A stretch of DNA of 57,001 bases, counting the filler, from Sluysia triapertura (Eukaryota), in the NCBI GenBank assembly GCA_046118255.1. It is 4 parts of 4 records of this genome, joined end to end, with 100 filler letters (N's around TTAATTAATTAA, not from the genome) between each part and the next. Parts side by side here need not be neighbours in the genome. Positions count along the whole stretch, not along the records: positions 41,542 to 57,001 come from JBJNIA010227680.1; 3 more parts are not named here. One strand, given 5' to 3'. Below are positions 39,732 through 57,001 of the stretch, one piece after another (the first letter of the stretch is position 1; each line of letters opens with the position of its first letter). Under the pieces are notes generated by a model, which was not told where the DNA came from, ran no database searches, and saw only the letters and a program-made list of their open reading frames with translations. The translations under genes and the position numbers were made by a program.

Positions 39732-41599
39732 ATTTCATTTTATAATTCTGTAATTATTATTAACAGGAAATAATTAATTTGTCATTTTATCATCTCTGAC
39801 TATTATAATTATTTAATCTGTATTGGAAATAATTTAAATTAATACTATGGCTATTATAATAATTAATCAAAAATAAGTATAAATATCAACGGTTTTGAAA
39901 TATATTTTGCAATTCGTAACTACACTGGTAATTTTGAAATTTGAATATTCTCAACTCGTAACAACTACACTGCAACGACATTGATAATTTTGAAGTTTGA
40001 ATATTACAAATTTGTAACAACGACGCTGATAATTAATAACAATCCTGGAAATATTGAAATTCATTTACATATAAAAGGTAAGAATTATTTCCAGTTTTAA
40101 GTGAAGTAAAATAAAAAATTTTTTTTACAAATTTTGACTAAATAAAAATAAATTTTTATAATATTAATTATATTAATGCTATTTTTTTGTTGATTAATTA
40201 ATTAAATTTTTGTTAGTTCTTTTAATAAAGGAAAAGAAAGGGTTGCAATTAGAGTCAGGTGAAATCAAGTAACTTTATAAAAGAGGTTAGTAGTTTAAAA
40301 TTAGATATATATTGCGAAGTTAAGTTGAAGTAAAAGGTTATTATAAAGTATATTAAGGAATTAAGACTTTACAAAGCGAATTAGACAAGTTTAGTAAATT
40401 AAAGTCTCTTCAATAATATTAAACAATACAAAGAAAAAATTCGAATAAATAAACCTTAAAAAATTAGAAATTTTGCTAAGTACTTCTATTTCGAATAATT
40501 GAGACGAGTATTCGAGTTCACACTTCCAGATAAGACAAAATATAGATAGAGGAAATTTACGATTATAACTTCAGATAAATTCAAGTAGTAATATAAAGTA
40601 AAGAATATTATTAAAGAAGTTTAGATTACCATCAGAGACTAAAAGTTTATTCATGCACACACAAATTTTATAAGTAATTTTTAAGTACAATCAAGCATAT
40701 ACAAATAGTATAAAATAAAATATAAAGTAATAATACCATAAAATTATTATTATTACTATTAATAATATTATTACTATCACTATTGTTATTACTATTTCAT
40801 TATCACTATTATTATTATATTAAGTATTTAAATTAAATTTATTAATATTATTAAAATATAAAACTTGAAATAATTATTGATAATATTTTAACTAACTTAT
40901 TCCATTAAAATAAAATTGTTTTGACAGAATAAATATCTTTTTACACTGAATTAAAATGATTAAAACTAATAACATAAATAATTAATATTGATTATTATCA
41001 TAATCATAGAATATTTTACAAAATTATTGGCATATTTGCAGTGGTTTTAGTACTATCACTTGTGTGGAATTAGAAAAGAGATAAAAATTACTCATTAAAA
41101 ATTGACTTTAAAATTACATAGTTCTTTATAATCTTTACAAACATATTTATAATCCAAACAGTCTCGTAGTAGTTATTAGTCGATGCATTGATAACTGAAT
41201 TTCTTAGGCTTAAATTCTTCAAAGTTGATTGACGATAAATTGAGTGATGGTGGTTAGAAAATCAGAAACATTTGTAAAAGCATCAAATTGTTTATCTTGC
41301 CAACATAGTCGAACTTAATGGTACACAGAACATCACAATCACAACAATTGGCCAACGCTTTTCATCTTTTCATTGTTCGTTTAAATTAAAGTTTTTTTCT
41401 AATAATATCATATTACATACCGAAAATTAATATAAAATTATNNNNNNNNNNNNNNNNNNNNNNNNNNNNNNNNNNNNNNNNNNNNTTAATTAATTAANNN
41501 NNNNNNNNNNNNNNNNNNNNNNNNNNNNNNNNNNNNNNNNNTATTTTATTTAATTGATATTTACACTTTTTAACAATACAATTAATATTTTCTTCCATG

Positions 41600-41855
41600 T
41601 TCATTTTTGAATCCATATGACAGCCCGTATTTCGTATTTTTCCATTTTAATTGATCTTCTGTTTGACAATTGACAAATTTTATGATATTTTTCCATTTCA
41701 AAAATATACTTCTTCAATTGAATTAAGTTGTGAAGAATACGGTGGAATAAATTTTATTTCATGATTATTCTTGACACACATATATCAGATGCAAGATGTC
41801 ATTTATGTGCATTATCCATAATGATTATCGTATTGGATAATTTATTTTCATCCAC

Positions 41856-41902
<47 letters not shown>

Positions 41903-42010
41903 TAATTTACAATGTTTGTAATTGCTGTACCGCTTTCATATCTTCTTATAATTTCTAGTCTAATTTCATTTGCTATTCTTATATTCAGCATATTTTATTG
42001 GTTAAGAATG
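41600..42010 (-). mobile_element. Internally deleted Tc1/IS630-family DDE transposase remnant
   Basis: SNTIIIMDNAHK* and EIKFIPPYSSQLNSIEEV (second Asp and Glu motifs). N-terminal HTH-like RIANEIRLEIIRRYESGTAITNIV lies on the other side of the microsatellite. Confidence 0.8.
41856..41905 (+). repeat. (AAT)n microsatellite within the Tc1-like remnant
   Basis: Direct reading; it produces the spurious poly-Ile ORF 41761-41958. Confidence 0.95.
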
Positions 42011-43866
42011 ATTCCATAAATTTATTAATTGTTTTAATGTAATGCTTAAATTATTTGACAAGAGGATTAAATTACATGAAAAACCATTCATTTGTTATTA
42101 GATTTAAGTACTTTTAATACTTTTATTTTTAAATTATCAAATTAAAACTCAGTAACAAAATAAATTCAGAATCTCGACACAGTCTTTATAATGATAATAC
42201 AAATTATTCTTTAATAACAAAACGTGTTTGATTATAAATATTTTAATATTCACAAATGTAATAAATATTAAACAGATCACTGATCCTTGTTCCTATATTT
42301 ATAAATACTTATTTTAATCAATTAATAAAGAATAAGCATTAATGTCACCGTTAACCACAGATGAATTAAGGCAGCGTCCCTAAAGCGAGAAAGTTTTGTC
42401 TTCTTTTATTGATCTAAAGCTCCAACTGTTTCCTTTTTTGTGCCTTTTTGTTTTGATTTAAGTATTTTGTTCTTATAATTCATCATAATAATTTGTTATT
42501 ATGAGTCATGACCCTTTTGTTTCCCCTTATCCTTCAATAATCCCAACATAACTTAAATTAAATAAATCAGGTCGAGCTTTCATAAATTGTTATTTTGACA
42601 TTTTTTGTGAAATTGTATTAGCCTAAGTTTTATGCAATTTTATTTTAAATAATAATGAATTTAAAACAACAATGAAAATTTCACTTATAAAGTGTTAGGT
42701 TGTCATTACTACCATCTAAAATCATTTAAAATAACTTTAAAAATATTTATTTTTCAAAAAAGAAAAATAAAATTTCGAAAAAAGAAATTAGCTTCTAAAA
42801 ATAGAACATTCAATCGATTTCTATTGGCTGAAAATCGACATTTGTTAATTGCCATTTTAAGACTTTGTTCACGACATTGCCATTTTTGGATTTTCAGTTT
42901 TGCTTTGACAGTTCTTTTGGAAAAATTATAAATTTAAAATTTGGATAATTTATTGGCATCATAACGTGAGTTGTGTTTTTTAAGGCTCTACTAATTTTAC
43001 TTAAGAAATTTAGAATTATAAAATCCACGTAGAATTTCTTTTTAAAAGAAAAGTTGAGTTTCCCCGCTATATCGGGGGTCAAAATAAAGGTAACATAATC
43101 ATACAGTTTTAATTACAATATTGAATTTTCATCTCTTTTGAATATTTTATCTGCAATAATTTCATAGGATTTAAATCTGACATAACTTTCGGATTTATTA
43201 TTGTTAAATATGTAACTTTTAGGATCTTTTAGAAGTTAACTTATCATGTTACAGGAGCGTCCACTCTACGTTGTAAGTCGTTTGTTGTAACCGGGCCCTG
43301 CTCAAAAATGTTTTGCCGCAGGTTTAGTGTTAAAAAACCACAGCAAAAGAATAAAAAAAGTTCATTGTTATAATTATTACACTTCATTATTATTATTATT
43401 ATAACAATAATAATTATTATTATTATTTATTATTATTATTATAGAATCTTCTATGACTTAAACTTGATTGATATCATTAAACCAGAATAAAATGACGTTG
43501 AAGTATATTATTTATAATAATTTAAAGCTACTGTGCTGCGACCCACCTTACGAGTCCACATTTCTTCACGACCCTTAGGGACTAAAATAAAAATAATGAA
43601 TTAAATTCAAAATATATTTAATAATAACACATTAGAATATACTACTTTTGTTGAGACTGTATCAATAATATCAATAAAATAATAATTGTATTAAAAATTA
43701 TTTAAAATTAGACTTATCATATTTAAAGAATATTTTATTATTAATACTTTATTATATTGAAGAACACTGATTCACAGTTTACAGTTCATAAAAGTACATT
43801 GCCCAGTTTTATTTGGTCTTTTAAAATGATAATTAATGAGATAATAAATAAAAATGAAAATAATAT

Positions 43867-46800
43867 TTATTTATTCGATGTAAAACTGAATTCTTTTTTC
43901 ATTAATTTCCCGGTTTCTGAAAACCAACCAATAATCTCTCGAGATTCAACTCTATCTTTGTCATAATCACTATAATCTTCACTATCTTCACTATCGCCAT
44001 CTTTATATACATTTTCATTGCTATTATTAGTTATGTTCACATAATGCATTAATTTCAAATTTTCACTATTTACATTATTTTTATTTTCATCTTCGTCCAA
44101 TTCATCATCAAACTCTTCATTATATTCGTCTAATTCATACATAACAATACAAACCAAACATCGTCTGTTGAGCTCAATAAAACAAGATCCACAATAACTG
44201 CTATTATCATCCGGACAGATATAAAATCCTTTGGTTTCTTTTTCATTACATATCAAACAATAATACTTTGCAAAAAATTTAGCCCAACCTTTAGTTAATC
44301 CAGGATAATCTTTTCGTAATGTCAAAAAGAAACTGTAATTTAATTCCAAACGATTTAGACGAATTTTTTGAATTATTACATTTTTCCTGGTATCCATATA
44401 ACGTTTTCGATTAAGTAATAATTTATTATACAAAAATACAGTACGTTGTTTTTCACGACTCGGATAAAAATAGCCACAAATCAAATGTCGAGATCGTATA
44501 AAATAACCACTTAATATCACCGATATTAATAGTACAACAATAATAATAACAAACATTGTTCGATAAAATGTACTTGTTCGAATTATATTTGGTGCACACA
44601 AAGCTAAACTATAAGTGACATTAAATCCAACCATTTTTCGAATTTCTGTTAGTACTAAATCTAATAAATATTTAACAACACCTTCACCCGATGTTGTAAT
44701 GTTCCAATGTTTACTACCTTTAATGTGCAACTGAATTTCACTGGCTATTTTGAGAACAATTAAAATTTCGTAAAACAAATCCGATACAATGAAAACAAAC
44801 CCCAATGATAATAATACAATGACTATACGGATAAAATCTTTCACTACTTTACTTAATTCGTCTTTTGTGTAAAACTTTTGCTTATAAATCAGGTGCTTCA
44901 ATTCAAAACTTTTAAAAGGCAACAAATAACTGCGTTGGTCATTTTGTCGTTGTTTATCGATAACTTCAAAATACTTCGTAATATATTTATTGTCGAAGTC
45001 TATGTCAGATAAATATTTCTTACTGTATTTATAAGATCCTAAAATTACTACCATCAATAAAAGACGTAACAATGAAAATAGTATTATCATTAGATCAACA
45101 AACACAACAATGGTATCTGTGATGAACAAGGTAGTTGTAGCAGCACCATGCATAACGTTTTCTGTTGTCAATTCAAAGTTGGGTCGATAAAAGTGCCATT
45201 GGATACCGAAATCAGTCAGATGCATCAATGATGATAAACCATCATCCACACCTCGATGTGCAGCACCGAAACCATCTTTAGCATTGGCGGCTTCGCGTTC
45301 ATTTGCACATTTTTGAGCACGTTCTGTGGCCTTGTTGACACTACAAGCTGATTCCGAGTCTAATTCATCATAACATAATCTACGTAAATCTAAACCAAAA
45401 TAAAACGCAACTAACGAAACAGCATAGAGCGATTCACAAGCTGCTGTTATCAACGATTGACAAATTTTAGTTTTAGTCATCTCAATACTTGAACAACCAC
45501 TGAACATTTTCGTACGCATTTTACTACCAATATCGGCACTTTTATTATCGAATACATTCTTAAATCGTCTAATATCAATCATAGTTTGTTTCAATTGAGC
45601 TTGAAGTTTTTGATATTGACTGTTCAATTTCTTAGATTTATGTTTCAATTTTATCTGTTCATGACGATCTAAATTTGATAATAACTTAATAAAACGATTT
45701 TTCAATGATTGTTCACGTGTTGTTGCATTTTCTATTTTGATTTCACGACGAATTTCTTTGCTACGATTGTCAGCTTCGTTGATATCGTTATTGAATGGTT
45801 GAGTAGCATTATATAAGTCTAATGTTGATGTGCGTAAACTTTCTGATGTTTCTATTGATTCCAATAATAAAGACTTCATTGGATTTAAGCTTAATTTGTG
45901 TACATCGCGACTAATATTCTGTGCCACTGTCATTGAACAATATAGCGACTTCATCACTTCATGAATATTATTAGCTAATGCAGCCATAGGCCCAACGGCA
46001 GTAATTTGAGCTAATTCGGTCATAAAGTAAGTACGTCCACTTTTCATTCCTAAACTAGGTAACAACAAAACAGCAATAGTACGAAATTGTTTAGAAACAA
46101 TAAATGAATAAGAAAACGTAATTAAAATGGTCATATAAATTAGTGTTGTCAAAGTATCACTGGAATTTTGATTAGGATTTTCAATTTTTGTTGCAAAAGC
46201 TAACAAAAACAATTTTCCTATATAATAACCACAAAATGCTTTAGCAAAAAATCGACAAAATACTACAATAAAACTAGGATCATTACCATATAAAATTGCT
46301 TCAAAAACTGGAAAATATATTCGTAGAAAGTGTTGAAATGACGTTAATATTGTATCATCTTTAATCGATCTCATGTAAGGTGTACCGTTAATAACACAAC
46401 CAATTTTAAGTCTATCTTCAATAACATTAAAATGTTTCAATTGATTTGGCAATTCCGATTTAGTAGAAGGCATTAACAATGGTACTCCACGAGATTCCAG
46501 TTCCAAAGCTCTAGTTGACATACTAACACTTAGATCAACTTGACCAGTATCATCTCCGAATATTCCACTTGATATACTTTGAAGTGACGTTTTAGTGGCC
46601 TTCAAAATGATTATTAAAAATAATTGAAATATACAACATATAAAAATCAAGATTAATTCTTTATAAACATTATTTTGAATCAATAAAGCTAATTTTGTTC
46701 TACAACCATCATAATAGTAATGCCTTAAGGGATCTTTATCTTTTAGCGTACAAATAATAGCTTTAGTACGATCACAGCAACTAAATGGAGCCAAATTAAC

Positions 46801-47379
46801 TAATCCCATACGACGGTTATTAGTCTGTGTTAATATATCAATTTCAAACGGTAACCATTTTATGTCAAACCAATCCGAAGGTCCATTGGCACCACAACAT
46901 TTAACTTGTATTTGTATATTATCGATTGTGTCTTTAATTTTTATCGAAGTTGACGTATTACTGTTATATAGCAACATTTTATCGTACATTTTATATTGTA
47001 TACTACTTTTCAAATAACCTATTGGGTCTAATATAAACAATGAACACCAACAATTAATAAATAATAACACTATATTTAGATAATTAAGGGGTGTTAAAAA
47101 TTTCCAAAATTTACGACTTGAATTTATTAAAACTAAAACCGAAAATGTAGCACCATTAATACTGAATGTAATAAATGTTGTAAAAACAACAATAATAACG
47201 TTTTGTAATATAAGATTATAAATATCCAAATTAAGAAATTTGGCGAATTGGAAATGTGTCGATAATAGTGGTATGTGGAAAAATAATAAATAGCAGCAAT
47301 ACATTCCTAAACCAATTGATAAAATAAGTCCACTAAAGATTATAAATTGTTGAATAATTTTGTTCACTTTAAATTTCAT
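43867..47379 (-). CDS. Intronless 1170-aa chimeric membrane protein: N-terminal peripherin/RDS-like tetraspanin fused to a DC-STAMP-domain protein (DCST1/DCST2, sneaky/SPE-42 family) with C-terminal RING-like finger and acidic tail
   Basis: aa 1 to about 265: three N-terminal hydrophobic segments, an EC2 loop IKDTIDNIQIQVKCCGANGPSDWFDIKW...APFSCC...C...GC, then TM4. From about aa 287: DCST motifs LLLPSLGMKSGR...GPMAALANN...SLYC, YLSDIDFDNKYITKYF..ID..R...LLP and RSRHLICGYFYPSREKQRTVFLY. Then CLIC-x10-CPDD...YCGSC...CLVC (about 44148-44259) and a D/E-rich tail. Confidence 0.9.
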   Translation of the reverse strand: MKFKVNKIIQQFIIFSGLILSIGLGMYCCYLLFFHIPLLSTHFQFAKFLNLDIYNLILQNVIIVVFTTFITFSINGATFSVLVLINSSRKFWKFLTPLNYLNIVLLFINCWCSLFILDPIGYLKSSIQYKMYDKMLLYNSNTSTSIKIKDTIDNIQIQVKCCGANGPSDWFDIKWLPFEIDILTQTNNRRMGLVNLAPFSCCDRTKAIICTLKDKDPLRHYYYDGCRTKLALLIQNNVYKELILIFICCIFQLFLIIILKATKTSLQSISSGIFGDDTGQVDLSVSMSTRALELESRGVPLLMPSTKSELPNQLKHFNVIEDRLKIGCVINGTPYMRSIKDDTILTSFQHFLRIYFPVFEAILYGNDPSFIVVFCRFFAKAFCGYYIGKLFLLAFATKIENPNQNSSDTLTTLIYMTILITFSYSFIVSKQFRTIAVLLLPSLGMKSGRTYFMTELAQITAVGPMAALANNIHEVMKSLYCSMTVAQNISRDVHKLSLNPMKSLLLESIETSESLRTSTLDLYNATQPFNNDINEADNRSKEIRREIKIENATTREQSLKNRFIKLLSNLDRHEQIKLKHKSKKLNSQYQKLQAQLKQTMIDIRRFKNVFDNKSADIGSKMRTKMFSGCSSIEMTKTKICQSLITAACESLYAVSLVAFYFGLDLRRLCYDELDSESACSVNKATERAQKCANEREAANAKDGFGAAHRGVDDGLSSLMHLTDFGIQWHFYRPNFELTTENVMHGAATTTLFITDTIVVFVDLMIILFSLLRLLLMVVILGSYKYSKKYLSDIDFDNKYITKYFEVIDKQRQNDQRSYLLPFKSFELKHLIYKQKFYTKDELSKVVKDFIRIVIVLLSLGFVFIVSDLFYEILIVLKIASEIQLHIKGSKHWNITTSGEGVVKYLLDLVLTEIRKMVGFNVTYSLALCAPNIIRTSTFYRTMFVIIIVVLLISVILSGYFIRSRHLICGYFYPSREKQRTVFLYNKLLLNRKRYMDTRKNVIIQKIRLNRLELNYSFFLTLRKDYPGLTKGWAKFFAKYYCLICNEKETKGFYICPDDNSSYCGSCFIELNRRCLVCIVMYELDEYNEEFDDELDEDENKNNVNSENLKLMHYVNITNNSNENVYKDGDSEDSEDYSDYDKDRVESREIIGWFSETGKLMKKEFSFTSNK

Positions 47380-47801
47380 ATTTAAATTGATTTTAATAAT
47401 TGTATATATATTTTAATTTAGCTGTAATGTAATAAGTGTATTGATAGGTAGACTATCAATTACTATAGACCCAGTAATCGAAATAAATCAATGATTAATG
47501 CGGAAACAATAAAGTACCTTTGAATTCGTAAATTTAAGACCTTCGAAAATTTAATAAGATAATGAAAAAATTTAAAAATTATTAAAAAATTTATTTGAAA
47601 TGAAATAATAGCTACTGCTAACAAAGACATTAATATTGATTCATTAATATTTAGTGCGTGTTTATATAAGCACAATAAGATTGTATGAATCTTAATATAA
47701 TTCATAAAGCTCATAAAAATCTTAAATACATCTTTATTTCATATTAATTTCATTGGTTGCCAATAAAAGTAAGATAAGAGCGCAATATAAATTAATATAA
47801 T

Positions 47802-48053
47802 CAGTGGCGGACTAAGGGTAAAGGGGTTCATTGTATTTCAGTCATGACTTTTTAAACACGTGCATAGTAAAGACTCGGGCGCGGATGCATAAGCATGGAA
47901 ACGCTCGTCCACACTTGTCGATTTCATCAATCAACGATTCGGAATAATTTGGATACGTTTCAGCAATATCATGTTTTTCTGTTAAATAAAAATAAAAATT
48001 TAAAACCTAATTTTCGGGCCCTAGGTACGTGCCTAGGCCTTAGTCGGCCCCTA
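47802..48053. mobile_element. 252-bp hAT-type MITE upstream of the tetraspanin-DCST gene
   Basis: TIRs CAGTGGCGGACTAAGG / CCTTAGTCGGCCCCTA (13/16 match). 8-bp TSD AATATAAT (47794-47801) / AGTATAAT (48054-48061). Confidence 0.8.
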
Positions 48054-48898
48054 AGTATAATAATCAAGTTTGGATATCAGTAAAGAAGATTGTAACTCAT
48101 TTGTTAGACTTATTTAATCAGAGTGTTTTTAAATAAATATATTTTATTGTAATTTTATTAAATAGTGTGAATGTTCGCTTAGTTTTGGAGGTTTTTTTAT
48201 TTTATTAAATAATACACATAAACATTGTAATTACAATATTCTGATTAATTTCTAAAACGATTAAGTTATGTATGACAAAATGCTTAAATTATTCGACATA
48301 TGAATTAAATTATTTGTAACAGAAATAATATTAGCAATATGATTATCGTTGAGGAATAAATAAATAAATAATTCGGAGAATGACGATAAACAAAAATTTA
48401 AATAATTTTAATTTTCAAAAATGAAAAGCACAAACACAAAAATCGAAACTGTAGAAATCGAAATAGTTTATAATTTAGTACTTTGTGATGCTTTAGTCTT
48501 AGAAAACGGTTAAAATATTCTGTCCTCCTTTGCGAAAGCAGTCTGTTATTTTCGATTTCAAGTTGTAGCAATATAGTCGATTGCACTTATAATAATTAAA
48601 ATCGACATTTAATAAGTTGATTAATTTATTTCGTGGGTTTTTAAATTTTATCATTGTTTTCTTACAAATTAACTTGTTATTATAATAAAAAAAGGACAAA
48701 AATATTCGAAATTTATTTTTAAACTTTATAACACAATAAAGTGCACAAAAATTACATGAAGTTTGATTTAACATAAATATGTTTGTCAGATATACTGTCC
48801 TCGATAATGTTCCGTTTGTGCCATAAGTTTCGCTACCTAAAAGAAAATAAAAAAATATAATGTCGTTAACATCAATAATAAAATTATTTACTTTGAGT

Positions 48899-49617
48899 TC
48901 ATTGGTCCTTATCGATGTCAGGATCTGATACTCCAAGAGTTCTCAAAACGTTTCCGATTCGAAATAAATGGTGGAAGTATTGTGCGAAGTCAGCATTAGG
49001 AATCACTAGTTCATCGACTGTATGGGCGTCTTTACAACTGCTACCATATCTCATACGATTTCCTTTTTGGTCGGTATTAAAAAAGCATATTCCCTTTTAA
49101 TGCCATTACTAGAACTTGTACATAGCCTGCGAGTTTGAAATAAATTACATTGTAACTGATCTGATGATATTATGTCATTGTCGTTACTATCATTAAGTTC
49201 ATCTTCATTCTTTCCCATCATTTCCAAAACCGTAAAAAATTACATTACCAAGGTGCGAAAAAGATGACAATCATAGAAAGTGATGTGAAGTTCATTACGT
49301 AATTCGAATAGATCGCAAACGACCAATACTAAACCATTTAAATTAATTTCACGAATTTTCTCTTGATGATTAGAAATATTGTCAGAACATATTACTTTGA
49401 ATTGCCCCACATTGCAAATAACGTCGTTCAAGGTAATTTCGCTCAGAATAAATGATGAAAACAAATCATTAATATCTTGAATATATCGTTTAAAACTTTT
49501 AGAAGTAATTTTACATTCATGAATTGAAGTGTTATTTTTTGGAGTCTGACTTTTTATTATCGAATATCGATTTAATTTATTTGATAAACAAAGAGTATAC
49601 ATATTTAGTTGAAACAC
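48899..49617 (-). pseudogene. Disrupted ORF with degenerate CCCH-type zinc finger
   Basis: ORF 49240-49617 continues past one in-frame TAA into an acidic linker, then after a frameshift reads CFFNTDQKGNRMRYGSSCKDAHTVDEL (49022-49087). The second Cys position is CGT (Arg). Confidence 0.5.
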
Positions 49618-50020
49618 TTTTATAGATTGTTATGTTATTATAAGTCAAAGGAATGACGACATATAAACGAGCAACGGTGGGTTTATCATAGGGTTACTTG
49701 TACTCACTTTATCGGTTCTATAATTTCTAGTTAATAATTTTTCATATTTTTCTCCAAAATATTCGCATTTAGGAACTAAAATGGAACCAAGAATTCATGT
49801 AAAATACAAAAATCAAGCCTCCAAGGACAATTAATAGTGATACAATAAAAAATGATAAATTAAATAATTTTTAATTTTTTTGCGTTACAATATTAATTTT
49901 TTTAGTTCAATTAGATCAAACTTTTCAATTTCTATTTTTAGCAGACAAATTCCCGATAATTATTATTGAATAATAATTTAATGATATTTTTCTGCATTGA
50001 ACTCTTTGCTTTGTCTGGAT

Positions 50021-50174
50021 TGGCTGTCCAACCAGAGATATAAAATACTAAGCAGAATCACTCTGGTTGGACAACCAGTAATAAAGTTAATAACAAAATG
50101 AATGAGAGATGAGCCACCATCAATGTTGAATTGAAGTTATACACAGTGATCAGTAATATCAACATTGATGGTGG
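50021..50174. repeat. Two adjacent inverted-repeat hairpins
   Basis: TGGCTGTCCAACCAGAG (50021-50037) / CTCTGGTTGGACAACCA (50061-50077), 16/17 match. CCACCATCAATGTTGA (50114-50129) / TCAACATTGATGGTGG (50159-50174), 16/16 match. Confidence 0.85.
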
Positions 50175-50239
50175 TAATTACTTATTTGTGTAAAAATTAA
50201 TATTTTAAAAATTAAAATGATAAATATAAAACATAAAAA

Positions 50240-50266
50240 TGATAACAATAATAATAATAACAGCAA

Positions 50267-50315
<49 letters not shown>

Positions 50316-50325
50316 GTTATTGCTG
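50240..50325. repeat. Facing (AAT)n / (TTA)n microsatellites
   Basis: Direct reading. Confidence 0.9.
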
Positions 50326-50449
50326 CATAAATTCTTTATTCTCAAATTAACACAATCTTCCTTTTGATTCCTTCAAATATTCTCAACATATTTAAATCTA
50401 GTAAAAATAATTTAAATATCTTAAATATCTTTGATGATGCATGAAGGTT

Positions 50450-51070
50450 AAATGTTATAATGTAGAAACTTAAGATTTAAGTATTTTAAAATAATATAAA
50501 TATTTTAAGTGGATTTAAAATATACATTGATGTTATGAATGGAATAATGTTTCTAGTTGAAGATGTTAATAGATTGTGAGTTGCTAATATGTTATAGGGT
50601 GTAGTATAGTTTATAAAAAGTAGATAAGTTATAGTCTAGCTTTTGTTGTGTTCAAAAGATGATTGTACAGTGTTGAGAATGTGATTTAATTTCATGATGT
50701 TTTTAAATAACCTTGTCTTGTGTGCTGTTAGGAATATGGATTTAAATTGGCTTTAGCAGATGAATTGTTTTAGTGGATGTAGAGGAGATAAATATGAGAA
50801 TGTTAAAATGCTAGAGAGTATGGTTTTATGTACATTGTGCTAATTTAGGTTAATATTGTTTTATGTTGATTTTAGAATGTAATCGTAGATTTCAATTGTT
50901 TTGAAAAATGGAAGTTGGATGTGAAAAGAAATGAGATATAAAAATGGTTGTAAAGAATTTAACAAAGTTGTTGTGTGGTGTTGAAACGGATATGATTTTA
51001 ATTATTTTTGTATTAGTTGTGAGTTGTAGACTTTGGAGGTGAATGTTATATTGAAGGAGACTTATGTAAC
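50450..51070 (-). mobile_element. Possible very old LINE ORF2 3' remnant
   Basis: Strong G+T skew on the + strand; the minus strand has HKTILSSILTFS, like a post-RT YKT.IRS.L.Y motif. Weak evidence. Confidence 0.25.
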
Positions 51071-54000
51071 AAAATATTATTAATGACTTTCTGAAAATGT
51101 GTGATATAAATTTTTAATAACATTTGTTAAGGTAATATGTTGGCCACTACAAGTACGTCGACTGTACCGTCTTTAAACAATAAAACACAAAGACTACTTA
51201 AAATTTTAAATTTGAAATCACGTGAATTAAACACTAAAAAAGTACATGTTTATGAAGTCTTGAAAAAAAAGACTTGTATATTTATGCAACAAACTTTTGA
51301 GCGGTTAGTGAGGTCAGTTAGAGGATACTATATGGTTATGTTTTATTTAGAATCGTTTAAGTTATCAAGCTTTAGATAGTAACTAGCTTATGTGTAAGAC
51401 AGGTGGACTGCTCGGAGAATATATTGGAACCTGTATGCCGTATTGCGCGAGACGTTTGCGATTTCCGCGGCATGACTTTTCAAATTTAACATGGTCTTTT
51501 ATATTATAAAATTGACATTGTTTGTTATTTTATCTATCATTTTCGTTCTATTACTGTTATTTTTACAATTTGCATAATATCTGGAGATTTTTTATATTTT
51601 CCGTATTCAGTTTATATTATCAAGGACCTTAGGTCCACCTTTGTAAAGATAAATATCTTAATACTTTTTAAGTTTAATAATCCTTATTTTGAATTAATGT
51701 TTTGTATCATAATTTATGAAGTACTAAACAATAAACAATTAAATAATAAACCATTAAACATTATAATATTAAATCCTATCATCACAACATTAAATTTGCC
51801 ATGTAAATGTCAAAATTATTATTGTCGGATTGTCAAAGAATGTTGCAGTGATTTGCTTAAGAAAATGTTTAATCAAAAATTTGGGAATGATTGGATGATG
51901 AGAAAATATAAAAAGAAATACCAAAAAATTTTTACCTAATACAACATCGCAACAGTAACAACAACAATTGATAATGTAAATGAGAAGATCCATGCCTTAA
52001 GTAATTTTGAATTTATTTTATAATTAAAAATAATAGTATTTTTGGATGATTTTTAAATAGTTTTTGTTCTTGTACCTTGCTGGAAAATTTATATTTGATA
52101 ATCGTAAATAATAGTTAATATTTTTCTTAACTCTTTTGATAGATTGTTATATCCTTGAGAATATTATAAACGTGATTGTTAATCTCGTCATTTTGATCAT
52201 TTTAGTACTGCTTAATAGGGATTTATAATAATACTAATTTGTAGTTGATTTTTATTTAACCAGTAAATTGTTGTGTTGTTTCCAAGAGCTTAATTTTGGG
52301 GTGAATAATTATTGATATTAAATAAGAGAATTATTGAAAATTTATATTTGATCTAGGAAATACTTAAATAATTGAGATTCTTTTTAAGCTAATATTGATT
52401 TATAGTAATTGATAATTTGTAAAAACGCAACAAAAGCACCAAATGACGAATACAAATTAAGAAACAGAACTGTAAAAAGTCAATATTAAAAGTTAAAACA
52501 CAAATAAAGGATCGTGATAAGCCGCCTTCAGTTCAATGATTAGTTAACAAACAAATAATAATTATGTTAAATGTTCCAACTGCAACACATTTTTCAAAAT
52601 ACGCGTTTCAATAGTAGATGGATTCGAGCTGTTATCCACACAGGAGCTTATGTTTATGGATCCTCAGCAAACAACAATTTATAATGTGGAACGAACACCA
52701 ATACATACGAACGGTATAATAATCTATGGACATTTAGATATATTGAATAAAATGTATATTTACGTTTGATTTAATAATTGGTTTGGATATAATTGATAAA
52801 TTAGACGATATAGTCACACATAATATGGTTTTATAAAATTTCCACAAGGCTCACAAATGTTAATTCCACAAGTTGTTGTTCCGCATAACGGCGATAAAAT
52901 TACTTTATATGAAACTCCGATTCATGTTCCGACACCTAGTCCAGTACTACCACCTTGTCAATTAAAATTTAGCGACGGAAGAGCAATAGAAAAGTACAAA
53001 ACAATCCGAATTAAATGAAAACCTCCATATGATTTATCAAGTCATTTTTCAATTTAATATTTTGAGCAATTAAACTTGTTTTATCTTTCACAAAAATGAC
53101 TTTTTTGTTGCTTTTCATCAAAATTTCATCAATATACATTAAATAACCATTAGATGCATTAATTAAAGATTTATTTTCTAACATATTTTTCAGTAATTGC
53201 AATGATACATTAAATTTCCATTAAATATTTTTGTAATAAATTAAAAATCCATTAAATATTTGAATTTGTTCTCATTAATGGATTTTATATTATTATTTTT
53301 ATTCAAAATATTATTATTATTATTTCTTTTTAATTAAAATTTTAAACGCAGCCAAACAGAGTTTTCTGGTTTTGAATAATTTTCGTGGTTATTCTTTTTA
53401 ACAATAGTGTTAAATTTTCTGGTGATAAAATAAACTTGTAACGAAAAGAAAAATTAGACATAATAAAGTTTACGGCTAATTTTAACACAGAATTAAAATT
53501 CCCAAACAACAAAAGAGGCTTTAATTGATCTATTTAAACACTTTTAAATGTAGCAAAATCCGATTTAAATACATTTAATATTTATGTTAGCTTAAGCTCA
53601 TAATAAAACCAGATTAAAGTCAATAAAAAAGATGCAATAGAAGTATTAGAAAAGTCAGGTCTTCTANNNNNNNNNNNNNNNNNNNNNNNNNNNNNNNNNN
53701 NNNNNNNNNNNNNNNNNNNNNNNNNNNNNNNNNNNNNNNNNNNNNNNNNNNNNNNNNNNNNNNNNNNNNNNNNNNNNNNNNNNNNNNNNNNNNNNNNNNN
53801 NNNNNNNNNNNNNNNNTGCAAATCAAATTATCAGATTCTCATAATAAGTAAGTTAGATAAGTCCTAATAATTTAATATTCAAGTTTGGTTGAATTCAATA
53901 TAAAGGAAGTAGAACAAATTTTTTAGAAAATCCTGACGTAATTAATGAAAAAGAATATTTTGAACTGATTAAAAAGAAATGTTAAATATTGATAAATATG

Positions 54001-55549
54001 TTATTAGACAACAGAATAAAGTGACTATTGAAATTAAAGGAAATTTCTAAAGATACGTCGCCCGTAATTCCAATGTACATAATAGACTGCAGTCGAACCC
54101 TATACTCATTACTCAAAAATAAATCAAGGATATTAAAAAATACTTGCAAACTTATTATAGATTTATGATGTGATATTTACATAGTGAAACTAGGTGTTAC
54201 GAGTTGATCCACCACAACTTCAGGTTATTATAATAGATTTTTTTCTAGATTTTATTCTTTGTCTTAAACAAAGGAACTTAATAATATAAACTTACGAGAT
54301 TTTATAGTAATTTAAGTATGTCGAAGCGACCGAGTTTCACCTTGAATGTGTTGAAAGAATATGCATTTACTTAAATTTATTAGCAATCCGAGGTTACTTA
54401 TACCTATTCACGTTAACTTCTAGTGTAAGGTACATTTTTGTGCTGAGGATATTTTCTCTTTACAGTTAATTCATTTTCCTATCTCCTAAAAATTATCTTC
54501 AAGTTCAAATTTATTTAATATAATAAAAAATAAGTTTTTCCTGAAGAACGTACAAATTCTTTAGGTTATATGTTGAATAAAAATAAAGATATATTCACAC
54601 TTTGGATTTATAATGGAAAATTTTCTTATTTATCTTTGTAACTTAGTTTAGTTTAATTTATAATCTCAATCTCAATTCTTATCTATATAGGCCGAGGGTA
54701 CACTTATGAATTAATTTTCTTATTGTCTGATAGGGTCTTCTAATATTTTAATATTAAATTCGTTAAAATCACTTTATATTAAAATATTTTTCTCCTAAAT
54801 TTATGTTTCCCTTTTATTAACAAGACCTATTTTATGTTTATAATTACGTAACGAGAATAAAATAGCTTTTCTATCTATAAAAAAATTCGTCTCACTTCTA
54901 AATAAAATAGTCAACCCTTTTATAATAAAATTTATCTTCGATTTATCTTAATATTTGATATAGTTCTTTACGAATGTGCTGGATCAACGTTAACAAATCT
55001 GACTTTTTATTTCCAATAAATCTTTTACAAATCTCTTACAAACATTTTACAAATTTTAGGAAAATGTTCTTATCGTTAATGTTTGTGGAATATTTTATGT
55101 TTTTATTATACTTAATAAAATTATAAAATTGTAATTTTTCTTTAACACTAAAAACTTTAAGAAGAAATTTAACAAAAATTTTATTTATTTGTTTAAAAAG
55201 TTTAATAATTAAATTAACAAAGACTTTAAGCTTAATGCCTTTAACAAAGATTAACAAATTTATAACAAACAAATTAACCCAACTAAGAAATATTTTTTAA
55301 TTAAATAACAAAAGAAACAAAATGAAAATATAAAATATAAACGTAAGTAAAAAGGTATTATGACATATTGATGCCTACATAATATAATTTCAGCAATTTT
55401 AATATGAAGTAAATACACCTTTTCCATAACACATCCAATAGCAAACTCATAAGTAATAGGGTTATGTAGAGGAATTGAAAAGGAAACGTACATTATATCT
55501 GATGATGAAGGTTTTCTCTTTTTTGGTAAGATATTAATGTTGTGCTGGT

Positions 55550-56200
55550 ATTTTCTACGAAAGATTTAATTTAACCTAGCAAAAATATCTAGAGGTCAGC
55601 TCGCCTAATAAACACGTCGTATACCTATGAATATGGCGTCCTATTAGGATTTTCTCTAAATTAATCTCGTCATTGTTTAACTGAAAATAGTTATATCGTT
55701 TTAAGTACCTAATTCAATTAATTAAGAAATTACACTCAGTGTGATTTAGCAAATATAGATTAAGTTAGCCCTTTTACGGTCTAGCAAATGATATATTTTA
55801 AAGGCTATATGTGTTATTATTCAATTACAAAATAGAGGAGATTAAAATCCGTATTCACTTAAAGTATGATAGACAAATTGTAAATCGAACACAAATCAAA
55901 AAATATAATATTGATAGTATTTTAAATTGTACTTAAAGAATATTAACAAATCTTTAGTACTGAAGATTTTTAAAATTACAAATTAATCTAGCCGCTAAGG
56001 TTTAGAATGATTATTGTTAGTTTACTTTTGATATTAAGTATTCCTAATTAACATACGGACAAAAAACTTAATAAAAATGACCTTAATTTCAATGACCTGA
56101 TTGAATCGAGAATTTTCCTTGCTGATTATATTGTAAAATATTTTTGCAATATTTTCGGAAATTCAATACATATACTGAAATTTTGGCCACCATATTGCTT
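55550..56200 (+). mobile_element. Decayed Ty3/gypsy-like pol remnant
   Basis: CTATTAGGATTT, GGTCTAGCAAAT (GLAN) and GAGAATTTTCCTT segments occur in the same order as their counterparts in 14130-14800. Confidence 0.4.
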
Positions 56201-56925
56201 GTTTACAACCTATTCAAATTTGATTTAGTAAAACACAAGAAATTAAATTCATTTAAAAGTAATTTAATTTATACAAATTAAAAATTTGATAATAATTAAA
56301 ATTAAATTTTTTTAAAATAACAAAATAAAACAATTGAAGTAAAACCATTAAAAATAAAAATTTATAAACAATTAAAAATATATGTTAATATACTTCAACA
56401 AATACTTTAATGTTCACTACGTTCACAAAATTGCATTATTTGAATAACTAAACTCCGTTTTATAATTAATGTAAAAACTAATTATGAAATATTTCCATGC
56501 TGATTTCAGTATCATATTTTTTATTATTACCTTTTAACTAGTGAATAAATTTATTTACATAAATGTCTATTTATTTAGATCATTCATGAACATGCAATTT
56601 TAATTAAAAATGAAGTAATGTCAATAAAATGATAAAATGGGATATCTATGCAGTTATTTCAATCAAAGAACAAAAATAATCTAATGGACTTTAATGATGT
56701 TATGTACATGTGAAGTGATTCTTGAGTGTACTAGTTTTCCATATTATTAATCTTTAACAGTTATGAATATAGTTCTTTTATTATCAACTTGTTTCAAAAT
56801 TTGAGGTGACAACATACATTTTTACCTTTCCCTTTAAACAATTTAACTTCATATGACATTTAACAAAATCAATAAATTATTTAATAAATTAACCAATTTA
56901 TTTCGACTTTTGTTATTAAAACCAA

Positions 56926-56993
<68 letters not shown>

Positions 56994-57001
56994 TAATAAT
57001 A
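56926..57001 (+). repeat. (AAT)n microsatellite running to the window end
   Basis: Direct reading. Confidence 0.95.

Follow-up and report, generated by a model that had tools for sequence, protein, structure and literature searches.

The window analysed here is a stretch of 57,001 nucleotides, filler included, from the genome of Sluysia triapertura (GCA_046118255.1). Its last piece, positions 41542-57001 (JBJNIA010227680.1), carries at 43867..47379, on the minus strand, an intronless open reading frame (ORF) encoding 1170 amino acids, in which a tetraspanin and a DCST protein are united in one polypeptide. The frame starts with ATG, has no internal stops and is closed by a stop codon. The piece has a GC content of about 25%, stops make up about 8% (~0.08) of codons on either strand, and only three ORFs of at least 100 amino acids are present (1170, 145 and 125). 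Since stops are so frequent and the two other ORFs so short, a chance origin of 1170 open codons is excluded, and ORF 43867..47379 is a real gene under constraint. The original prediction, made from the sequence alone, had described precisely this: one 1170-codon frame among short random ORFs, without introns and with both domains in a single polypeptide, and the ORF scan, together with Pfam matches to Tetraspanin and DC_STAMP above the curated cut-offs, bears it out. The encoded product is a multi-pass membrane protein of about 135 kDa.

We also compared the locus with the one public run found to contain this DNA (hereafter X1; 83% of the sampled words were present). X1 contigs are identical to the window, with 0 differences, over 46265-46634 and 46617-46807, which independently confirms the tetraspanin/DCST junction at the DNA level. 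Between them, these stretches cover the interval 46400-46650, which had been singled out as the place to check. We are highly confident that the fused gene is genuine. The exact 1170-residue protein was absent from a collection of 15 billion proteins, and Rfam and tRNA scans of the piece gave no matches. The features of the gene are as follows; those marked AF2 come from AlphaFold2 models, with confidence given as pLDDT (predicted local distance difference test).

43867..47379, minus strand: complete intronless ORF, 1170 amino acids plus stop (ORF scan and translation)
46606..47346, minus strand: Tetraspanin domain, residues 12-258, with four transmembrane (TM) helices (PF00335, 50.1 bits; hydropathy; AF2 helices 7-42, 51-85, 89-139 and 226-273)
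46666..47025, minus strand: large second extracellular loop (EC2), residues ~119-238, peripherin-2/ROM1-like by sequence, with CCG at 46891-46899, PFSCC at 46774-46788, C210 and C226 (translation, alignment, PDB profile comparison)
46288..46593, minus strand: linker from the fourth tetraspanin helix (TM4) to the first DCST helix, residues ~263-364, with 270-318 predicted to be disordered (AF2 pLDDT <50; X1 contig 46265-46634 identical)
44134..46347, minus strand: DCST1/Sneaky-homologous region, residues 345-1082 (phmmer alignments to flatworm and other DCST1 proteins, and their names)
45406..46044, minus strand: two very long helices, 446-547 and 583-658, interpreted as a putative ectodomain stalk with a low-confidence tip at 512-586 (AF2)
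45307..45495, minus strand: conserved cysteines C629, C640, C648, C669, C679 and C691 (invariant or nearly so in the ten-protein and 116-sequence alignments)
44428..44997, minus strand: DC_STAMP domain, residues 795-984 (PF07782, E 5.9e-31)
44149..44259, minus strand: cysteine-rich RING-like finger, residues 1041-1077 (six cysteines nearly invariant in 116 sequences)
43870..44127, minus strand: acidic low-complexity C-terminal tail, residues 1085-1170 (no counterpart in aligned homologues)
44432-44436, no strand assigned: run of five A that reads as four A in X1, shifting the frame at codon ~982 and giving a stop at about codon 1000 (X1 contigs)

The tetraspanin module

The Pfam Tetraspanin profile (PF00335) scores 50.1 bits over residues 12-258, against a curated cut-off of 32.1. 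Hydropathy delimits four hydrophobic segments (~12-37, 55-82, 98-118 and 240-262), and AF2 places helices in matching positions. The CCG motif (residues 161-163), PFSCC (198-202) and the further cysteines C210 and C226 are all located between the third and the fourth helix, in EC2. The features of the superfamily are thus present, namely four TM helices, a small first extracellular loop (EC1) and a large EC2, CCG and PxxCC motifs, and further EC2 cysteines; the complete tetraspanin read earlier from CCG, PxSCC and four TM helices is confirmed.

As for the type of tetraspanin, the sequence points to peripherin-2/ROM1 rather than to CD9/CD81. Peripherin-2 (PRPH2/RDS) and ROM1 are the best sequence matches among solved structures: the query alone finds Peripherin-2 with E 7.8e-11, and also ROM1, while a profile of 16 flatworm tetraspanin modules finds Peripherin-2 with E 5.3e-19, ROM1 with E 3.1e-12 and CD63 with E 1.3e-7, other tetraspanins being weaker. 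CD9 and CD81 were not among the PDB sequence matches at E <=0.01, though full-length structures of them exist. In the ESM Atlas, the tetraspanin part leads to arthropod "peripherin-2-like" clusters (0.92). The module shares with Peripherin-2 and ROM1 a KCCG-NG--DWF-I-W stretch, PFSCC, an eight-residue spacing to the next cysteine and the large EC2. These proteins differ from it in being stand-alone, with about 350 residues and a C-terminal tail of their own, and they function in vertebrate photoreceptors at the disc rim. Another difference concerns PRPH2 position 150, which we take to be the cysteine forming a disulfide between PRPH2 molecules (a serine in the crystallised construct); it aligns with Ile146 of the query.

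The original prediction had named CD9 and CD81 as tetraspanins that organise fusion-competent membrane domains; the module is not of their type, as both the PDB profile and the ESM Atlas led elsewhere. CD9 and CD81 belong to the same superfamily and are linked to gamete fusion, being egg tetraspanins of mammalian fertilisation, but they act on the egg, opposite the sperm DCST1/2. A model of the tetraspanin part taken alone reached pLDDT 56, and its Foldseek matches were non-significant, with PRPH2, CD53, ROM1, Tspan15 and UPK1B in the top rows.

The DCST part and its relatives

The full DC_STAMP profile (PF07782, positions 1-191) aligns with residues 795-984 at 108.2 bits, against a curated cut-off of 25. 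Further downstream, the finger shows the spacing C-x2-C-x10-C-x7-C-x2-C-x7-C-x2-C over residues 1041-1077, that is, seven cysteines, six of which (C1041, C1044, C1055, C1063, C1066 and C1077) are nearly invariant among 116 DCST sequences. The fourth cysteine of the eight-cysteine consensus finger is missing throughout the flatworm clade described below. The earlier reading of this half as a DCST protein with a RING-like finger thus stands as regards the domain and the cysteine-rich finger, but the Pfam RING match is non-significant (E 0.47). The query retains every residue that is nearly invariant across the 116 DCST sequences, and conserved positions are found in the linker as well (L301, G327, L352 and R353 in the ten-protein alignment). 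A PDB sequence search gave no match to the DCST part.

Outside the flatworms, the best named matches carry the name DCST1 or "protein sneaky" and belong to an annelid, a barnacle, an oyster, beetles, bugs, a tunicate and a newt; none of these has a tetraspanin part. In our tree, which contained no sequences labelled DCST2 or DC-STAMP, the flatworm clade is placed among DCST1/Sneaky proteins. DC-STAMP and OC-STAMP, known from the fusion of osteoclasts and giant cells, share the Pfam domain with the query and are not its nearest named relatives; they are vertebrate proteins acting in body cells. DCST1 corresponds to Sneaky and SPE-49, and DCST2 to SPE-42 (Inoue et al. 2021, PMC8055269). DCST1, Drosophila Sneaky and C. 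elegans SPE-49 are proteins of the sperm membrane without which gametes do not fuse. Judging from these sequence comparisons, the DCST part is likely a DCST1 orthologue. It resembles DCST1, Sneaky and SPE-49 in its DC_STAMP domain, multi-pass TM core, conserved cysteines and C-terminal cysteine-rich finger, whereas those proteins have about 650-950 residues, no tetraspanin and only 20-28% identity to the window protein; the flatworm clade also stands apart from them in the lost fourth cysteine of the finger.

The fusion across flatworms

With HMMER, a set of 1.8 billion representative proteins was scanned in full, which yielded 720 hits; the best 150 of them were inspected. The best match, P0001, is a protein of 1129 amino acids from a public run and is colinear with the query (query 3-1082 against its own 3-1085; E 5e-102, 27% identity). 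All of the next best hits that were looked up come from flatworms: Taenia, Paragonimus, Calicophoron, Schistosoma, Echinostoma, Trichobilharzia, Dicrocoelium, the monogenean Cichlidogyrus and the free-living Macrostomum, most entries being named "E3 ubiquitin-protein ligase DCST1" or "DC_STAMP domain-containing protein". Apart from Dicrocoelium, each of these genera provided a colinear homologue, as did P0001. The original prediction knew the two domains only from separate proteins and would have given up novelty if databases already contained the architecture. That is the case for Platyhelminthes: public entries with the fusion come from eight flatworm genera at least, with P0001 in addition. 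Entries such as Taenia solium KAL5966444.1, Paragonimus westermani KAF8572061.1, Echinostoma caproni VDP83715.1 and Macrostomum lignano PAA57369.1 have the same colinear architecture and fall in the same clade. They differ in having 20-25% identity to the window protein over the whole alignment and, in Macrostomum and Paragonimus, in having introns; none of them has a described function.

Both Tetraspanin and DC_STAMP exceed the Pfam cut-offs in six of the eight homologues tested; the tetraspanin match of the Macrostomum homologue stays below the cut-off and the Schistosoma homologue has none. At the level of single residues, CCG and C201 (the second cysteine of PxSCC) do not vary among the 10 aligned proteins, those of Schistosoma and Macrostomum included, and P198 and S200 are nearly invariant there. 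A hidden Markov model of the tetraspanin part matched only the fused clade among 171 fetched proteins. The ESM Atlas likewise lists a 50-member "DCST1 family" cluster, in which every member has DC_STAMP (100%) and 70% have Tetraspanin; a phylum is recorded for a single member, which is a flatworm.

The DCST region was used to build a maximum-likelihood tree (quick IQ-TREE, 115 rows), in which all 18 fused proteins form one clade, with a Shimodaira-Hasegawa-like approximate likelihood ratio test (SH-aLRT) support of 98. Six other members of the clade have no tetraspanin part; five of them are fragments (477-597 amino acids) and the sixth is a Schistosoma japonicum model of 929 amino acids. The window protein is sister (support 87) to the cestodes and trematodes, with Macrostomum, P0001 and Cichlidogyrus outside that pair. 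Going by this placement, the DNA most likely stems from a free-living flatworm that is nearer than Macrostomum to the parasitic classes, and its AT-richness might fit a planarian. The fusion is thus common to flatworms of several classes and confined in the tree to one clade, and we infer that it arose once, early in flatworm evolution.

The gene structures of two orthologues bear on how the fusion and its intronless form should be understood. The Paragonimus westermani gene (JTDF01000191.1, 3001-16851) has three exons, and its exon 2, coding for residues 149-686, extends from the tetraspanin (EC2 and TM4) across the linker and reaches the beginning of the DCST part. Because a single exon spans the junction, the fusion in other species is not a merged gene model. 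In Macrostomum lignano (NIVC01002497.1, 3001-12014) there are at least six exons, and the exon that ends the tetraspanin continues into the linker. Since these orthologues have three and at least six exons and the window gene has none, introns were lost in the lineage of the window.

In full-text searches we found no paper on a tetraspanin-DCST fusion, or on flatworm DCST proteins. The window sequence is a new member of a family that is present in databases and undescribed in the papers found. What appears to be new is the occurrence of the fusion across flatworm classes and the peripherin-like character of its tetraspanin, which would be of modest interest for fertilisation biology.

Predicted structure and topology

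An AF2 model of the full protein, built with the 116-sequence alignment, has a pLDDT of 68 and a predicted template modelling score (pTM) of 0.61. The DCST TM core and the DC_STAMP domain are confident (>90), and linker residues 270-318 fall below 50. Foldseek of the full model against the PDB returned long-helix noise only. We infer that the long helices 446-547 and 583-658 would form an ectodomain stalk with a low-confidence tip. A "hydrophobic tip" of DCST1/2 has been proposed in the SPARK preprint (10.64898/2026.05.13.724128), and the modelled stalk tip of the query may recall it. The topology expected from the two families fits, as the original prediction had held: going by standard family topologies, both tetraspanin ends should be cytosolic, and so should the DCST N-terminus and the finger.

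Variants and possible derivatives in run X1

The one-base deletion in the A run at 44432-44436 (see the list above) is accompanied in X1 by a G>A change at 44441. The window is not in error here, because its frame is the conserved one; the X1 variant may represent an allele, a paralogue or a contig error.

The summed depth of X1 contigs is also uneven across the ORF: it amounts to 500-1370x over 45534-45926 and 46844-47367, where the contigs show fixed differences from the window, and to 15-50x elsewhere. X1 contigs join 45857 to 46956, skipping 1098 bases (366 codons) in frame with 3 letters between. The pattern suggests that a derivative of the gene with an internal deletion occurs in tens of copies at other places of the genome; neither a second copy of the gene nor a derivative was found within piece 41542-57001. 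Another X1 contig, joining 43873 to 47561 and skipping the ORF together with 181 bp upstream of it, was discounted. On its shorter side it aligns over 22 bases only, which are AT-rich and of low complexity, so that the join may have arisen from a chance alignment and need not reflect an allele lacking the gene.

Possible role and alternative explanations

Taken together, we consider it likely that the gene encodes a flatworm-type orthologue of the sperm fusion factor DCST1, with an N-terminal peripherin-like tetraspanin gained early in flatworms. From the N-terminus, such a protein would consist of the tetraspanin, a partly disordered linker of about 100 residues and a DCST TM bundle that bears six conserved cysteines and a long helical stalk, followed by the DC_STAMP domain, the cysteine-rich finger and the acidic tail. 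By analogy with DCST1 in mouse, fish, fly and worm, it would act in the sperm membrane at gamete fusion, a role that we favour slightly. The tetraspanin module might supply an oligomerising, membrane-curving or microdomain scaffold within the same polypeptide, perhaps comparable to the part played by peripherin-2 and ROM1 in photoreceptor discs.

Several points weigh against this scenario. The tetraspanin part is modelled with low confidence (pLDDT 50-68), and among the public runs we found no RNA run containing the sequence. The DCST1 assignment is drawn from the names of the nearest hits, in a tree that had no labelled DCST2. The inspection covered the best 150 of 720 hits, so flatworms may not be the only animals with the fusion, and within the fused clade there is the Schistosoma japonicum model without a tetraspanin, which is probably an incomplete gene model. 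Finally, the X1 variant would remove the cysteine finger, and with its one-base deletion in mind, the gene may be variable or decaying in the species.

These last observations lead to a different explanation, in which the window copy is a recently duplicated or retroposed intronless copy, dispensable and starting to decay, while the working gene, if any, lies elsewhere. It would account for the lack of introns where Paragonimus has at least three exons and Macrostomum at least six, for the frameshift at codon ~982, and for the parts of the ORF at 500-1370x against 15-50x, some of them directly joined, which imply many derived partial copies. However, 1170 codons have stayed open where 8% of codons are stops, all nearly invariant family residues are retained, no poly-A remnant or flanking duplication is seen after the stop codon, and the piece contains no second copy, so that we hold decay to be very unlikely. 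An assembly or sequencing artefact joining two neighbouring genes is hardly credible at all: the sole hint of it is the homopolymer difference from X1, far from the junction, whereas independent contigs match the junction exactly, homologues are colinear across it with conserved linker residues, and one Paragonimus exon spans it.

It is also conceivable that the same protein fuses body cells rather than gametes, for instance in syncytial tissues such as the tegument, and that the added tetraspanin marks a change of role. The DC_STAMP family is generally known to include body-cell fusion factors, and flatworms, the phylum to which the gene fusion is specific, are known for their syncytial epithelia. 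The syncytial tegument is typical of the parasitic flatworm classes, but Macrostomum and the apparently free-living lineage of the window carry the fusion too, and the nearest named relatives are DCST1/Sneaky, not DC-STAMP or OC-STAMP. A body-cell role thus seems to us unlikely.

No other animal fertilisation factors are known to be as widely conserved as DCST1 and DCST2. Against this background, the flatworm fusion offers a testable hint of a tetraspanin scaffold beside DCST1 in the same membrane. The original prediction had proposed that the two modules work as one complex, and this idea gains weight because the fusion has been kept across flatworm classes. The link it drew to CD9 is only indirect. 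According to a 2026 preprint, DCST1/2 form the core of a complex on the sperm, which encounters the tetraspanin CD9 of the egg (10.64898/2026.05.13.724128); vertebrate CD9 thus sits on the egg, opposite the sperm DCST1/2, and the step from a same-polypeptide fusion to a CD9-DCST link is not a direct one.

It is tempting to go further and suppose that DCST1 needs, in its own membrane, a peripherin-type tetraspanin that oligomerises and bends the membrane, thereby making the sperm membrane fusible. We put this forward as a speculation that is rather improbable as it stands. If it were true, a missing same-membrane component would be added to the DCST1/2 fertilisation machinery, and where DCST1 is unfused, a separate tetraspanin of the sperm should do the same job in the animal concerned, a partner predictable from the fusion. 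Flatworms with working RNA interference (Macrostomum, Schmidtea and Schistosoma) are places where such ideas could be tested. For transmission-blocking work on parasitic flatworms, too, a fertility factor whose extracellular loop is large could be of interest.

Surroundings of the gene

The ORF of 125 amino acids at 49240-49617, on the minus strand, matches the SAM domain of KIDINS220/ARMS (PF23307, E 7e-14) and is probably an exon of a neighbouring same-strand gene. Just downstream of the fused gene, 43700-43830 reaches a summed X1 contig depth of about 7000x, which indicates a high-copy repeat. The stretch 50042-51541 differs from the remainder of the piece in its strongly positive GC skew (+0.43 to +0.45), and several short tandem repeats are found at 50191-50519.

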